64,000 bases of DNA from Anaeramoeba ignava BMAN (lineage: Eukaryota > Protista > Anaeramoebae): NCBI GenBank assembly GCA_028826165.1, contig JAPDFW010000089.1:186001-250000 (forward strand). Reading direction: 5' to 3'. This document shows, piece after piece, positions 7,618 through 37,220 of the stretch. The stretch's first letter is position 1. Each line of letters starts with the position of its first letter. The notes under the pieces were generated by a model. It saw only the letters and a list, made by a program, of their open reading frames with translations. It was not told the DNA's origin and did no database searches. Made by a program: the position numbers and the translations under genes.

Positions 7618-9963
7618 ATGTCTGTTCCTAAATTTAGTGTATGTTTTATTTTAATTATTTTTATTTTATTTTTATTTTAATTTTTTTTTTTGGGGTGTGT
7701 TTGTGTTTCTGTTTTAGTTTTTATTTTATTTTATTAACGTTAAAACTTAAATTAAAAAAAAAATTTTTTTATTTAAACAAAAAAAAAAAGGATGAAGAAG
7801 CCTTATTTGAGGCTGCTGAAGAAGGAAAAGTTTCACAAGTTGCTAAATTATTAAAAAAGGGTGTTCGAGTTGATGCAGAAAATCAAGTATAAATTTAATT
7901 TAATTTAGTTTTATTTCTAAAAAAAATTCTTAATTAACCATTTTAAATTTAAAAACATTTAAAAACAAATTTAAAAACAAATTTAAAAACAAATTTAAAA
8001 ACAAATTTAAAAACAAATTTAAAAACAAATTAAATTTAAAATTAAAATAAAAATTGGAAATTAAATTTAAAACAAATTTAAAACAAATTTAAAAACAAAT
8101 TTAAAAACAAATTTAAAAACATTTAAAAACAAATTTAAAAACAAATTTAAAAACAAATTTAAAACAAATTTAAAATTAAAATGGAAATTAAATTTAAAAT
8201 TAAATTGGAAATTAAATTGGAAATTAAATTTAAAATTAAATTTAAAATTAAATTGGAAATTAAATTTAAAATTAAAATGGAAATTAAATTTAAAAACAAA
8301 TTTAAAACAAATTTAAAATAAAAATTGGAAATTAAATTTAAAAACAAATTTAAAAACAAATTTAAAAACAAATTTAAAACAAATTTAAAATAAAAATTCG
8401 AAACGAATTTAAAATTAAATTGGAAATTAAATTTAAAAACAAATTTAAAATAAAAATTTAAAATTAAAATAAAAATTGGAAATTAAATTTATTTTTATTA
8501 GGATGTAATCGATATTTGCTTTAATAATAAAATTTTTTTTTTCTTTATTTAATAAGCTTTCATTATTATAGAGATGGAATCCACTCCTTGTTGCAACACA
8601 AGAAGGACATGAAGATGTTGTAAGATTGCTTCTTGAAAATCACGCAAATGTGAATCACCAAAACAAAGTAAAAAACAAAACTAAAAAAAATTTCATCATT
8701 TAAATTTAAATTTAAATTTAAATTTAAATTCTTTTTTTTTTATTTAATTTTTTAGAATGTATTTCTTTTTCTTTTTAAATCATAAAGAAGAAAATATATT
8801 AAATAACTTATTTTATATATATCAATTTATTATTCAGGGTGCAACTGCATTATATATTGCAAGTCAAGAAGGACACCAGGAAATTGTGAAAGAATTAATC
8901 AAAAAAAAAGCATCTATTGATCTTACTAATTCTGTTTGAATTATATTAATTAAAAAAAATTTTAATTTTATATTAATTTATTTTATATTAATTTAGAATG
9001 TAATTAATATTATTTTTATTATTGAGAAAATTGATTAAATAATTTAATAATCGATTAATTATTTTTTTTAAGGGAGCAACTCCTTTGTTAATTGCTTGCC
9101 AAGAAGGTCATTTAGAAATTGTTAGAGAACTTCTTAATGCTGGTGCAGATGTTAACCATGCAGATTCTGTAAATAAATAAATAAAAATAATTTTATCATT
9201 TCTTTATTTATTTAATATACTTATTTTTTAAATAATTTTAATTTTAGAAAGTAAATTTTTTTTTGATATTAATTCGTATTTTAATTATTTATTTATAATT
9301 TTTTAGAATGTAATTTAAAATTAAAATTAAATTAAATTAAATATCAATATAATTTAAACTAAGTTCTATTGATTAAATTCAAAAAGGGTGATACTGCTCT
9401 TCAATATGCAGTGAGTAATAGACATTTGGACGTAGTTAAAGAATTGTTAGCAAGAAATGTTCTTGTTGATGTTCAAGATAAAGTAAATCAAAATAAATCA
9501 AAATAAATCAAATGATTTACTAATTTTTAAATATAAAATAGTATGTAAAAAAAAATATTTTAATTGAATTTTGGAATGTAATTAAATAAAAAATTTAATT
9601 AATTATTTGTTTAAAAGGGAGATACTGCTTTAATGCTTGCTTGCGAAATTGGATTAGTTCCTTTTGTTAGAGAACTTATTAAAGCAAATGCTTCTGTTGA
9701 TAAAACAAATTCAGTAAATCAAAATAATTTTAAATTTTTAATTTTTAATTTTTAATTTTTAAAATAAAAAAAGGATGTAAATTAAAATTATTTTAGAAGA
9801 AGTAAAAAAATTTTATTTTTATTATTATTTTTATTATTAGGGAAATACTGCACTTGATTTGGCAGAAGAAGAAGAAATTAAACAATTACTTCAAAGTAAA
9901 ATTAAGAAAAAAACAAGAGGAGCTTTTGCAAAATGTTTTGCTTGCGGACAATCAGACAACTAA
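7618..9963 (+). CDS. Ankyrin-repeat protein (6-7 repeats). Exons 7618-7638, 7791-7886, 8572-8667, 8838-8933, 9073-9168, 9387-9482, 9618-9713, 9841-9963, plus 3-nt microexons
   Basis: Six exons of exactly 96 nt (e.g. GATPLLIACQEGHLEIVRELLNAGADVNHADS), all phase-0 GT-AG; C-terminus ...KCFACGQSDN*. Confidence 0.92.
8502..9776 (+). other. 3-nt microexons: 8502-8504 GAT, 8756-8758 AAT, 8997-8999 AAT, 9248-9250 AAA, 9307-9309 AAT, 9542-9544 TAT, 9774-9776 GAT
   Basis: Each is AG|NNN|GTA in a G-poor intron; 32-aa exon + 1 codon gives the canonical 33-aa ankyrin repeat. Confidence 0.85.
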
Positions 9964-14800: not shown

Positions 14801-17800
14801 CCAAATATCAAATCAGAAAATCTCAATGAAAACAAACAAGAAAACAACAGCACTAAAAAGCCTATAAAAATGATAGAAGTTGAGCGTTCGTTTTCAATCG
14901 ATCACGAAACATACCAGGAATATGGAGGAACATATACAGAACAATTGGATTTTCTGCGGAGTCAATTCTCAGCGCAATTATTCAAGCTTTTCGATGATGA
15001 AAGCCAAAATGTAAAGCGAGTACTTGTGAAAAACATAACGGAACTCGGTGTTTTTTTCGGGACAGAAATTTCCAACGACACTTTATTGCCGTTGCTTATT
15101 ACATTTCTCAACGACAAAGATTGGCAATTACGCAATGAATTTTTCGATCACATCCTTGATTTGCTTCCCTTTTTAGTAACAAAAACAGTGAAGAATATCA
15201 TTCTTCCTTGTGTGATTGAATTTCTAACAGATCCTGAGGAATTTGTTGTCGAAAAAACCGTTCATTTACTTGCCGTGTTTGTAATATTGGGTTTGCTAAA
15301 CGATTTGGATCTCCAAAAAGTTTCAGACAAAGCAATGCCTCTTCTCGTTCATCCAAACATATGGATCAAAAACTCAGCAGTCACTCTTTGCTCCTCTATT
15401 GCTAAGCATCTTGGATTGCCCAAGTTTCATTTACTTATAACCCCCAAATTGGAACCTTTTTTGGAATTCCCTCTTCTGGATTTTGACGAGACAAGTATTT
15501 TGTCCGTTTTAAAAACACAAGTTTCAAGACAATTATACGAAAGAGTTATTGAGGAAACACACCGAAGCAAAGGCCTCAATCTGCGCCAAATGGAGTTTGA
15601 AGCGTTGATGATTGAGAACAAGCAAGAGGCTGACCAAAAACGTTCAGTCTATTTAAAAAATGCTGAAAATGATGAGTTATTGAAATTACAACTTGAGGAA
15701 GTCCAGGTTTCTGATCAATCACATATTCATCCAAAAGATTCTTTTTTCAGAAATGATTCCATTGAAAATTTACTTTTGCAAAGAGCATATGAAGAACAAA
15801 AGAAAATTTTGAGTTTGAAATCTTTTATTCTGAAAGCTTCACAAAATCCTCAAAGAAGAAGAGAAATTTTTGGAATGATTGGGAATTTAAGAGAATCACA
15901 ACCAATTTTGAATGAGAAAACAAATGACCAAAAAAACAAAAAAAATAAAAATGATAAAAACAATAGAAATGATGATGAAAAAGATGAACACAAATTTAGA
16001 CACATTTTGTATACATTACAATATTTACCAGAAATCAAATTCGATAAAGAGCAAAAAAAGCTGAACAAAAAACAACAAAAATCAAATAATTCAGACACAA
16101 AAGATTCTGGAAATTTAGAAAAAAATCAGTTGAATGAAAACTTGACTCAAGAAAATCAATTTGATATATTTGAAAAATCCAAAAACGAATTGAAATCAAA
16201 AATAGCATCCCTTTTAGATATAAATCCAGAAATTGGACAAAAAACACCTAAAAAAATACAATTTCTTGGAAAAAGAAAACCAAATTTGAACCAGGAATTT
16301 AAAGACAAAATGTTTGAGATTGAAATACCACAAGATGTGCCAAATTATCGAGGATTTAAATATGAGGAAAATTCATTTGATCTGCAATCAGAAAACCACG
16401 AAAAACCAACAAAATCACAAAATGCGCACAAAAAAACATATTCAGGAGAAGAAGTTCAAATAAACGAACTGAAGAGATCCAACACTGCTTTTGCAGGAGT
16501 AACAACAAGTTATGAAAAGGATCGGAAATTTCATGGAAAACAAAAACAAGAAAAATCACGGAAAGAATTGATAGCAAAACGAAAAGCGGGACTTCCAATT
16601 TCATATCCTCAATCACCCATGGATTCACACAGACTAACACTACAACACTCGCCTCCAAAACATAAATCACGGCTTTCGGCTCAACAGGAATATCAAAACG
16701 AACAATATTTACTCTCCCAGTTATCCCTTTTTGGATTTTATTCTGAATCTTCAACTCCTGTCAAAATAACTGAAAATCAAGAACCAATTTTCCAAATCAA
16801 AAATTACACTGAAAATCTAATTGAAAAAATTTACAGTGAAGCAGAAGAAAACAAAAAGGAAAAATCAAAAGAAGAACAAGAACAAAAAACAGAAATGCAA
16901 GAGAACCCAAACAACCAGGAAAAAACACTCGAACTCGAAAAAGAACAAGAGAAAGCAAAAGAGAAAACAAACGAAATGAGTTTTATTGAAAATTCCAATT
17001 TCAAAATTGCCAATGAAATTCGGACAAATTTTGACCCGAACGCTCAATACGAGATTGGCAAACAAGGCGCAAAAATATTCAAGAAAAACATGCCAGTTCC
17101 TTATGAAAAACTGGGCAGAATCCAGCAGAAAACAGGGAAATATCCACCAAATTTTTTCTTAGGCCAAAACATAAACACTTGGGTTCCTAAAGGATTACAA
17201 ATTGCACATTTATCAGAACACACAAAATCAGTCAATAAAATCGCAATATCACCAGATAATCTTTTCTTTGCAACAGCATCTGATGACGAAACTGTGAAAA
17301 TATGGCTCACTGAAAATCTGCAAAAAAATCAACTTACAAAATCAGCAAAAACATATTCATTTCAGAAAGGAAAAATCACTTCACTTACTATTTTGCCAAA
17401 CACACACACAATCATTTCAGGATCAAGTGATGGCACAATCCATTTGTTCAGAGTTGATGAGATTGATTCTTATGACTACAAATCAAGTCGAGACAGAAAG
17501 CGCAAGAAAATGAAAAACATTTCCAAAAACCAAAAAATCAGCGAGAAAAGAAGATCATCAATGCTGACAAGCTCAATATCAGGCTCAATATCAAGCCCTG
17601 TCAAACTGAGTAAACCCTCTTTAACTCTCAACGAACAATCTATGCAAAATATGGCGTATTTCCCCTTTAAGATTATTTCGCCTCACGAAGGATCAATTGT
17701 TGATATTCAAAATTTTGGAGGAGAATTTGGATTTTCTTTCATTTACTTGACACAATCAGGTATCTGTCATGTTCATGACTTAAGATGCGATGAAGAAGTT

Positions 17801-34068: not shown

Positions 34069-37000
34069 TTATTGATGAAATTTTGCTTTATAAAATAAAA
34101 GTTTTGAATTCTTATTAAGTTGAAAAAAATCTTGAAAAAAATTCAAATCAAATTCTTCCAAAAACTTTTGATTTGCTTTTCTATTTTTGCTAATCAAAAA
34201 ATCATTGCTGGTAATTTCATCAAAATAAAGAAACTTAATCAATAAATTAATAGCATTAAATGATTTTTCTGTAAAATCTTTTGATCTGTTTGAATCATCT
34301 TGAACTAAAATGAACATTTCCCGAAATAATTGACTTCGTGCTTCAAGAATAAACTTATGAACCCTCACCTCCTTTTCACAAACTTCAATCACAAAATCTT
34401 TTCCATCTTGATCATAATATAGTTGCTTAATATCTTCTTTGAAGGATCTTTTATTTTGTTGATCAATCCCAAATTCATCAAAAATTGGTTTTAATAAAAT
34501 TTGATCTTCTTTTTTCATTATTCCGTTATAAACCCATAAAAGAAATTTCTTGATGTTTTCTCGCGAATATTTCTTGAGAATGTGGTCTGCAATTTCTGCC
34601 TTTTTTCCTGTTCTATATTCAATTAAAAATCGATGAACTAAATATTTTGAAATTTGAAAATCTGTCAATTCTTTTCTTTTGAAAATTCCTTTAAAATCAT
34701 CATAAAAAGATGATCCTGTTTGAAAGGCTAATTTTAATAGTGGATTTCGTGTATAATCACTTGGCATTTTGTTGTTCAAATCATATACATTTGGATCTAT
34801 TCCTTTTCCAATTAAAAAATCCACTATTTTTTCCATTTCATCAATTTTCTCACAAGAATTCATTGCTAAAAAATGAAAAACACTTCTTTTCTGAGAATTT
34901 CATTCAAATCATTTTTGTTTGTATTCCATTTATTAGCCCAAAAATACTCATTACATTTCTATTCAAATAAAAACCGTACTTGATTCTAATTGATAATTTT
35001 TGTTAAATAAAATTCTTTTTTCTTTTATATTTATTTTTTTTACATCTTCTTCAATTGGAAATTCATTTTCAAATGCATATTTAATCATTTCATATGTAAT
35101 TCCTCGGTTTTGACAAATAAAATGAAATGCGTTTTGCTTTAATTTTCAAGGAATTTAATTTTTAATTTAATTTGAATTTTAATAAAATACTTTTTGTTTT
35201 TACTTTCTAAAAATTCTTTTTGAATGAATAATTGCAAAAGAAAAAGATATAAATATTTTATTTATTATTTACAAACTTATAAAAAAATTATTTAAATTTT
35301 TCACTTTAATTCTCCAAAAACCAGAAAAAAACTTTACTAACTAAAAAAGAAAAAAAATCAATTTAATCAATTTAATCAATTTAATCAATTTAATCAATTT
35401 AATCAATTTAATCAATTTAATCAATTTAATCAATTTAATCAATTTAATCAATTTAATCAATTTAATCAATATTTACTCTCTAATTTAAAAAAGAGAATTA
35501 AGTTTAAAATTTAACTAAAAGGAAAATAAACTTTTTTTTTATTAATACTGTTTTAAAATGAATTCCTGCTTTATTTTGGATACAAAATTTCAAAATATCT
35601 TCATTTAAAAATATATTTTGACATAAATACATAAATGGTGTACACTAAAATTAAAATTAAAATTAAAATCAAAATCAAAATCAAAATCAAAATCAAAATC
35701 AAAATTAAAATCAAAATTAAAATCAAGAACAATTTAAAAATTTATATTTAAAAATCTATTGAATTTACATCCTTTATCCAAAATCAAAATATAAATCAAA
35801 ATCAAAATCTATAAAAAAATATAGAAAATACATGCTTTTTTATATAAATTTTTTATATAAATTTAATTTCGGATATTTTTTTTGAATTGTTTTTTTTTAC
35901 ATCCTAATAATAATAATAATAATGAAAATCAAAATGAAAATCAAAATATTTGTTTTAAATTCTTAATTATTCAATAATTTTTGTTTGATTTATTATTTAT
36001 TTATTTTTTACATCAAGAACATTAATATTTGCTTTGATTTTCAAAACAAATTTGAATCATTTCTTTATTTATTGATTGATTTTTACATAATACATGAAAT
36101 GGAGTCATCTATTAATAAACAAAAAATAGAATGAGTTTTTTTTTTTAAGAAGAAAAGTTTGTTTTGTTATTAAAAAATTACTCTCTAAAAATAAAAGATG
36201 TTATAAAATTGATTTCAATCTCCTTTTCCTTTGTTGTTGAAAATGAATAATTTTAATATTATATTTACTTTCTTTTTTAAATTTAAAATACAAAATTAAA
36301 TTTAAAATTCAAAATTAAATTTAAAATACAAAATTTAAAATTAAATTACATACTAAGAAAATGAAGTTTTTTGTTATATTTTTGTTATATTTTTAACACA
36401 AAAAAAAGAGTAATTAATTTTTTTACAAATTGTAAATTAATATCTGCTTCATTTTTCAAACAAAATGAAAGTATTTCAGGAGTAATTGAATAATTTTGGC
36501 ATAAAAAATGAAAAGGAGTTGGTAAATCTTGAGAAGTCTAAATTTAAATTTAAATTTAAATTTAAAATCAAATAAATTTTTTTGATTTTTTTGATTCAAT
36601 TACATCTTTATCATTTAAATGTTTTCCTAATTCAAGAAAAAATTGAATTAATTCTATTGAGATTATTTTTTGTTGAACAAGAAAAATGAAAGGATCTGGC
36701 TAATTATAAAGTAATTTAATTGAATGAAATTTAATAATTTGGGATTTAAATCATAATAAAAAGATATTTACATACTTTTAAAAAAATTTAAAATTAAAAT
36801 TTAAATTTAAAAAAATAATAATAATAATAATAATCAAACTTGTTTAAAATTAACATTTTTTTCCTTTAAATATTTTAAATTTTCAACTGATAAATGTGGA
36901 TTTCTACAATAAAAATGAATTAAATTTAACTATAATAATAAAATTAATAAATAAATAATTTTTGAATTTTGAAATTAAGTTTTACTCGCTAAATTTTCAA

Positions 37001-37220
37001 AAACAAAATTTGTTTGTGTTTGATTTTGATTTTTAAACTAAAAAAAAATACATTTTCTTTCTTTTAAAATTTTTTAAAATTAATAAATATAAAAAATATA
37101 AAAAATTTGTATTTTTTTTACATGAAAACAATTAATTCCTTTTTTTTTAATAATATTTTTAATAATTTCAAAATTATTTGTTTTTTGTATTTGTAAAGTT
37201 TCTTTAGTTGAAAGTGTCAT
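34069..37220 (-). CDS. Ankyrin-repeat + tandem BTB protein. Main exons 37122-37220, 36840-36929, 36604-36699, 36427-36537, 36012-36108, 35549-35644, 35044-35136, 34069-34890, plus microexons
   Basis: Phase-0 exons such as PTPFHFLCQNYSITPEILSFCLKNEADIN, CTPFMYLCQN..., QNAFHFICQN...; last exon has BTB motifs (TDFQI..VHRFLIEYR; DFVIEVCEKEVRVHKFILEARSQLFREMF). One exon carries a +1 base. Confidence 0.85.
34980..37060 (-). other. Microexon arrays, in transcript order: 37052-37060 (9 nt KEN, tentative), 36986-36988 CGA; 36772-36774 TAT; 36350-36352 TAT, 36269-36271 AAA, 36182-36184 AGA; 35901-35903 GAT, 35832-35834 CAT, 35769-35771 GAT; 35477-35479 AGA, 35338-35340 TTA, 35273-35275 TTT, 35204-35206 AAA; 34980-34985 AATCAA
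   Basis: Each reads AG|exon|GTA on the minus strand (TAC..CT on plus), mostly separated by 60-90 nt introns; none encodes a stop. Confidence 0.8.

Follow-up and report, generated by a model that had tools for sequence, protein, structure and literature searches.

Single-codon exons at the repeat loops of an ankyrin-BTB gene in Anaeramoeba ignava

Layout of the ankyrin-BTB gene

The window, by which we mean the whole 64,000-nucleotide stretch of Anaeramoeba ignava DNA that was analysed, carries on its minus strand, from 37220 down to 34069, a gene that combines ankyrin-type repeats with a BTB/POZ domain. We count 22 exons in it. Besides the start exon and an 822-nt last exon there are six ankyrin-type exons, 12 exons of a single codon, one of 9 nt and one of 6 nt, and the introns measure 56-136 nt. 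Exon 1 (37122-37220, 99 nt, phase 0) would begin at the ATG at 37220, and its translation is, by eye, not hydrophobic. A 9-nt microexon, KEN (37052-37060), which is absent from the first-pass annotation of this DNA, is predicted from sequence and reading frame, as are the single-codon exons R (36986-36988) and Y (36772-36774) on either side of a 90-nt ankyrin-like exon (36840-36929). An ankyrin-like exon of 96 nt (36604-36699) and an ankyrin exon of 111 nt (36427-36537) come next; the latter holds its own loop residues, and the junction upstream of it (36603-36538) carries no cassette, the term we use for an AG-NNN-GT site. Three arrays of single-codon exons then alternate with the remaining ankyrin exons. 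The array Y/K/R (36350-36352, 36269-36271 and 36182-36184) precedes an exon that is 97 nt long in the assembly (36012-36108), and D/H/D (35901-35903, 35832-35834 and 35769-35771) precedes one of 96 nt (35549-35644), the codons of both arrays again being placed by sequence and frame. The third array, R/L/F/K (35477-35479, 35338-35340, 35273-35275 and 35204-35206), leads into an ankyrin-like exon of 93 nt (35044-35136). A 6-nt microexon, NQ (34980-34985), likewise missing from the first-pass annotation, and an 89-nt intron (34891-34979) are followed by the last exon (34069-34890), which encodes a final ankyrin-like repeat and the BTB/POZ domain and ends with the stop codon at 34069-34071.

For the domain searches, the last exon and the single exons served as queries rather than the joined protein. 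The BTB/POZ domain is present in the last exon (PF00651, E 1.3e-08, 35.4 bits with a cut-off of 20.5). Singly, the exons of the tandem ankyrin repeats fall below the Pfam cut-off (Ank_3 E 0.045 for the 111-nt exon and 0.04 for the exon at 35549-35644; no Pfam ankyrin match for the 90-nt exon), yet they match a local ankyrin-exon HMM, seeded from exons of the window gene and extended with paralog exons (26 bits for the 90-nt exon; the 96-nt exon at 36604-36699 and the 111-nt exon are likewise matched). Both here and in the paralogs there is one phase-compatible exon per ankyrin repeat. The six lengths of 90, 96, 111, 97, 96 and 93 nt do not bear out the uniform 96-nt exons described earlier, and the 97-nt exon is frameshifted in the assembly.

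This frameshift, at base 36033, is probably an assembly error. In one run, X1, a DNA contig at a depth of 58.5 lacks the base, leaving an exon of 96 nt without a stop; a low-depth second run, X5, is not listed with the deletion, and the extra base may be an allele rather than an error. That the 97-nt exon marks a pseudogene is unlikely, given the X1 contig without base 36033 and the fact that the gene is transcribed. The insertion may also explain why the public model, P0001, is confined to the last exon, in which all of its 264 aa lie. Separately, two bases of the last exon, 34448 and 34727, are not the same in the assembly and in run X4, which comes from another sample and another study; the cause would be an allele or another isolate.

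Between 37400 and 34900, the minus strand contains exactly 12 AG-NNN-GT sites, all with GTA donors and none with a stop codon. The first-pass annotation had reported the same 12 sense-codon cassettes at the same positions, its numbers being the low ends, and its minimal introns of 60-84 nt plus one of 136 nt agree with the 78, 84, 66, 60, 136, 62 and 66 nt that we measured between cassettes. In 2000 dinucleotide shuffles of the inter-exon DNA the mean number of cassettes was 0.26 and the maximum 3, against the 12 observed. The donors and acceptors of the microexons are similar to those of the long exons. Thus the sites have the make-up of spliceosomal microexons (internal exons of 3-27 nt between an AG acceptor and a GT donor), and the coding constraint is there as well, with no stops and the frame kept. 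Window cassettes with intron-like flanks number 24, of which 19 lie in the two ankyrin genes (18 passing a GC filter plus the filtered-out cassette at 35340, taken from the unfiltered site list) and the remaining five equal the background of other spacings. Elsewhere in the genome there are also long arrays whose cassettes have no ankyrin exon between them.

Public gene models contain the cassette codons at 0 of 27 junctions, and on that ground it could be argued that the motifs arise by chance or mark recursive-splicing points, their three bases never reaching the mRNA. We rejected those models as proof of skipping, because the codons are wholly absent from them and the models sometimes hold intron-derived filler at cassette junctions. 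Against the argument stand the shuffle test, the missing stops, the repeat spacing that is regained with the cassettes and 12 extra bases in RNA, the last two described below. The first three of these rule out a chance motif, and we regard the argument as a whole as exceedingly improbable.

Microexons in RNA-derived contigs

The sequencing runs are labelled 'DNA?' or '?' and none is recorded as RNA; the contigs of X3 and X4, however, are joined precisely at splice sites, and on this basis we treat both runs as RNA. Record 12 of X3 is 207 nt long (96+12+93+6). It has the 93-nt exon at record positions 7-99, and at 100-200 it matches 35537-35637 without gaps and with 4 mismatches, so that 12 letters must lie between the exons flanking the R/L/F/K array. 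Compared with the start of the intron, the joined R, L, F and K codons show exactly four differences, which is the mismatch count seen. Five 12-nt exon chains are possible; the other four would give 6-9 mismatches, two of them with stops, which excludes a single 12-nt exon, or any other chain, as the insert. Contig coordinates, length and mismatch count, rather than printed letters, thus indicate that all four codons are spliced in. Since the insert and both flanks fit one 31-letter word, the four codons co-occur in reads, and the contig, which also contains the exon at 35549-35644, runs through the array unbranched. A direct, cassette-free joining of the long exons is not what it shows.

The NQ microexon is also included in RNA. 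In record 17 of X4, from a separate study, 35044 and 34890 are separated by six letters, which show the single mismatch predicted for NQ, and the match of X3 record 11 begins at 34985; the 93-nt exon is complete in both X3 record 12 and X4 record 17. RNA support for full inclusion therefore covers one of the three arrays and one other microexon, the remaining cassettes having no listed contig piece across them. For R/L/F/K and NQ, the contigs already contradict the chance and recursive-splicing argument, and together with the shuffle test and the absence of stops they support the earlier proposal that the cassettes are microexons.

The variation that is visible in the RNA contigs is intron retention, not skipping. 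The intron at 34979-34891 is retained in X3 record 11 at a depth of 26, compared with 72 for the last exon (about one third), and brings in a stop at 34961, upstream of the BTB domain; the intron at 35203-35137 is retained in an X4 contig. Such retention would be expected if the layout were a means of expression control, in which 21 introns slow splicing and some are retained to give truncated or degraded transcripts. Partly spliced pre-mRNA accounts for it equally well, however, and the best-supported retained intron adjoins the 6-nt exon rather than a single-codon array. We consider control of this kind improbable.

The headline of the first-pass annotation was receptor diversification by splicing, with alternative or mutually exclusive cassettes furnishing each gene with a library of binding loops (36 paths, or as many as 2^12 forms). 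All exons are in phase 0, so every subset is in frame; the cassettes encode residues that designed ankyrin libraries randomise (PMC4308713), and schistosome micro-exon genes build isoforms in this way (PMC10526429). Among the contigs, however, R/L/F/K is seen only in its all-four form and no skipped form is found, with the proviso that contigs drop rare variants and would render minor skipped forms invisible. Neither the 36 paths nor the 2^12 forms are supported, although some rare skipping may occur below what contigs retain.

Loop spacing and the spread of the layout

Within the genome (a 42.8-Mb assembly of 147 contigs) relatives of the last exon number at least 144, and the paralogs carry Ank_2 and BTB matches. 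Public proteins identical to the paralog loci (100%) are annotated as A. ignava, and the A+T content and short introns agree with the published genome (PMC11550330). Cassette arrays between ankyrin exons were found at 17 of 20 paralog loci; of the other three, one has its loop residues inside exons and in two no ankyrin exons were seen. Sites between ankyrin exons comprise 216 of 3 nt, against 0-12 for each other length. With the window gene counted, none of 215 inter-exon 3-nt codons is a stop, compared with 9.4% of intronic triplets (P about 6e-10). One paralog locus, L031, has 24 AG-NNN-GT sites on its antisense strand, which probably belong to a neighbouring ankyrin gene of the same layout.

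When all cassettes are included, the canonical spacing (four residues of D-x-x-G-x-T) is obtained at 40 of 50 junctions, and at 45 once GTG donors are allowed, in keeping with the claimed position of the cassettes at the ankyrin beta-turn. A single cassette per array would leave 1-3 loop residues instead of the canonical four and restores the spacing at 0 of 50 junctions; one exon per array does not suffice for a normal protein. Moreover, the number of cassettes complements the start of the following exon, being two where that exon starts two residues before the T, at the G position (32 cases), and three where it starts one residue before the T (8 cases). The window arrays Y/K/R and D/H/D are of the three-cassette type, as the earlier suggestion that D-[D-H-D]-C-T-P and F-[Y-K-R]-M-T-P repair the spacing would have it.

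Taken with the four-codon insert seen in RNA, the 45 of 50 junctions favour the more conservative reading that the first-pass annotation had also offered. We consider very probable the joint statement that the gene is spliced in the ordinary spliceosomal GT-AG manner and has a product of about 517 aa, with one phase-0 exon for every repeat body and with single-codon exons for the beta-turn residues, normally all included in series. A surplus of residues speaks against full inclusion and for a choice among cassettes at some junctions, where there are more codons than the consensus requires: with all four codons, R/L/F/K gives five loop residues, one above consensus, and a K/N pair elsewhere in the window is one codon above need. 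Nevertheless, the all-four contig and the 0 of 50 junctions rule out mutually exclusive choice as the main mode. The contig is all-in and unbranched, cassette number in the paralogs equals the residues that the fold needs, and the loop codons show no extra variability (entropies are given below), all of which make combinatorial splicing very unlikely.

The pair just mentioned lies in a second ankyrin gene of the window (7791-9963, plus strand), whose 96-nt exons are each followed by one 3-nt exon (8502, 8756, 8997, 9542 and 9774) to give 33-residue repeats. At 9248-9250 and 9307-9309 (plus strand) it has a K and an N cassette where one would suffice for the consensus. To judge by its sequence, this pair is the best local candidate for alternative choice or for a one-residue loop insertion.

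A genome-wide scan for a strict tandem pattern gave 1,100 pairs with 3 nt and 71 with 4 nt; reversed-pattern controls gave 515 and 750, which is no clean null in an AT-rich genome. The first codon of the tandem pattern is TAA or TAG in 0 cases and TAT or TAC in 51. At G000:C87:271578-274279 (minus strand), 16 or more single-codon cassettes follow each other at intervals of about 88 nt, and their spacers are nearly identical; the series reads R V I L L I A L A L L L I G I V, with more cassettes upstream, and resembles a membrane helix in which every codon would have an exon to itself. Other long tandem runs with cloned spacers are at G000:C1:409310-413131, C1:942331-942794 and C1:1058078-1073175 (all minus strand), the codons being polar in the first and mostly I, M, F, L and G in the other two. 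An Ank_2 scan of the genome scored intronless genes only, and is uninformative on long arrays; many ankyrin genes of A. ignava are intronless. As some paralogs are intronless or cassette-free, ankyrin proteins can do without the layout.

The same arrays are found in five ankyrin-BTB genes of A. flamelloides (L051, L055, L056, L057 and L058), with introns of about 100-130 nt; strict cassette counts on the sense and antisense strands are 18 and 1 for L051, and 18 and 0 for L058. Average protein identity between the two species is only 37% (PMC11550330). Two A. flamelloides strains (96.8% identical) keep the AG and GT at 20 of 20 listed cassettes with one of the 20 codons changed, which at this identity is a weak test. 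In L051, a long ankyrin loop at 15439-17054 apparently derives from at least 10 single-codon exons and adjoins an unannotated ankyrin exon (17292-17384).

Origin, comparisons and meaning

Splicing probably proceeds by intron definition, a mode associated with short introns. Each AT-rich intron of 55-140 nt would then be recognised alone and exon size would hardly matter. We favour it because the introns flanking cassettes track the mode of each species: a median of 71 nt against a modal length of 76 nt in A. ignava (PMC11550330 supplement), and about 100-130 nt against 113-124 nt in A. flamelloides. The layout presumably predates the split between the two species and would have spread by duplication of repeats and of genes. 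A loop would gain or lose a residue by genomic duplication or loss of one intron-plus-codon unit; the near-identical spacers of long arrays point to such tandem duplication. Ankyrin-BTB proteins are BTB/Cullin-3 adaptors, and the domains of the present protein suggest a substrate-binding adaptor of this type, whose diversity would come from hundreds of paralogs rather than from isoforms.

Another way to view the layout is as a device for genomic codon shuffling under selection, whereby mRNAs include all codons, similar introns speed the swapping, duplication or conversion of loop codons between repeats and paralogs, and this effect maintains the layout. In a duplicated repeat pair of paralog L034, all three loop codons differ (6 of 9 nt) at an exon divergence of 12%, in a second pair, whose introns are 99% identical, the loop differs by one non-synonymous change, and long arrays elsewhere combine near-identical spacers with differing codons. 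The two informative pairs hint at fast loop change and are too few for a conclusion. Moreover, entropy at the microexon-coded positions 2 and 3 (3.0 and 3.5 bits) is about that at the exon-coded positions 5 and 13 (3.3 and 3.2 bits); exon-coded positions being equally variable, variability alone needs no special mechanism. The single codon changed among 20 between the A. flamelloides strains, and the many intronless ankyrin genes in the same genome as the arrays, also count against shuffling. It is compatible with serial inclusion, as an addition to it, and we think it rather unlikely. Much the same doubt applies to the broader idea that single-codon exons are kept to diversify loops residue by residue, through low-level regulated skipping, recombination between similar introns or both, yielding a natural library of ankyrin binders with counterparts in non-ankyrin proteins; we entertain this tentatively, as an outside prospect.

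Exons of 1-3 nt are known from plants (the 1-nt exons of APC11 and VPS55; PMC8831610) and animals (a 3-bp exon of Drosophila homothorax, PMC7392893; a three-base exon of MAP4K5, PMC8632122), with further tiny exons in RPS24 (PMC11162997). Like those described here, such isolated microexons are spliceosomal, have at most three bases between an AG and a GT, and are frequently overlooked by annotation. They are mostly a matter of one exon in one gene, however, whereas in Anaeramoeba three to four single-codon exons succeed one another at a fixed structural position of the repeat, and each genome has hundreds to thousands of copies. The micro-exon genes (MEGs) of Schistosoma also string together very short exons, with lengths that are mostly divisible by three, but their exons are mostly of 15 nt, with introns of 0.1-5 kb, secreted products and documented isoforms (PMC10526429). 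The A. ignava gene instead has 3-nt exons, introns of about 70 nt, a folded ankyrin-BTB product with no evident signal peptide, and no skipping seen in contigs. Nor is most of its coding sequence in microexons between long introns, as in MEGs: these account for 51 of 1554 bases, and its introns are short throughout. The ROCO-LRR and NB-ARC-TPR genes of Ectocarpus resemble it in having one exon per repeat within an expanded family of candidate recognition proteins, but there whole repeat exons are shuffled, and the abstract does not mention single-codon loop exons (PMC3341825).

With other ankyrin-BTB proteins the gene shares its combination of repeats and BTB domain, and with designed ankyrin libraries its variable binding-surface positions 2 and 3, the positions of DxxGxTP that those libraries randomise (PMC4308713). 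In the subfamily described here position 4 is microexon-coded too, and the variable positions 5, 10 and 13 are in the long exon. Neither the literature searched nor the genome paper with its supplements (PMC11550330) mentions microexons in Anaeramoeba. As far as the comparison with plant and animal microexons, MEGs and the abstract on Ectocarpus goes, there is no match for a gene family in which one-codon exons are strung together at a constant loop position. The RNA-contig evidence, the spacing test and the comparison with A. flamelloides are new here.

Thus, we conclude that the ankyrin-BTB layout is real, extreme and missed by public annotation, and that it is probably not a mix-and-match receptor system. 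Because public models skip the codons, published Anaeramoeba ankyrin proteins lack binding-loop residues and intron counts are too low. Four one-codon exons joined in order would push the spliceosome to an extreme and offer a direct means of testing intron definition, posing the question of how both of two splice sites separated by three bases can be used, and which is used first. The layout spans a large gene family in two species. It also makes it testable whether gene structure can be selected for the evolvability of a binding surface.
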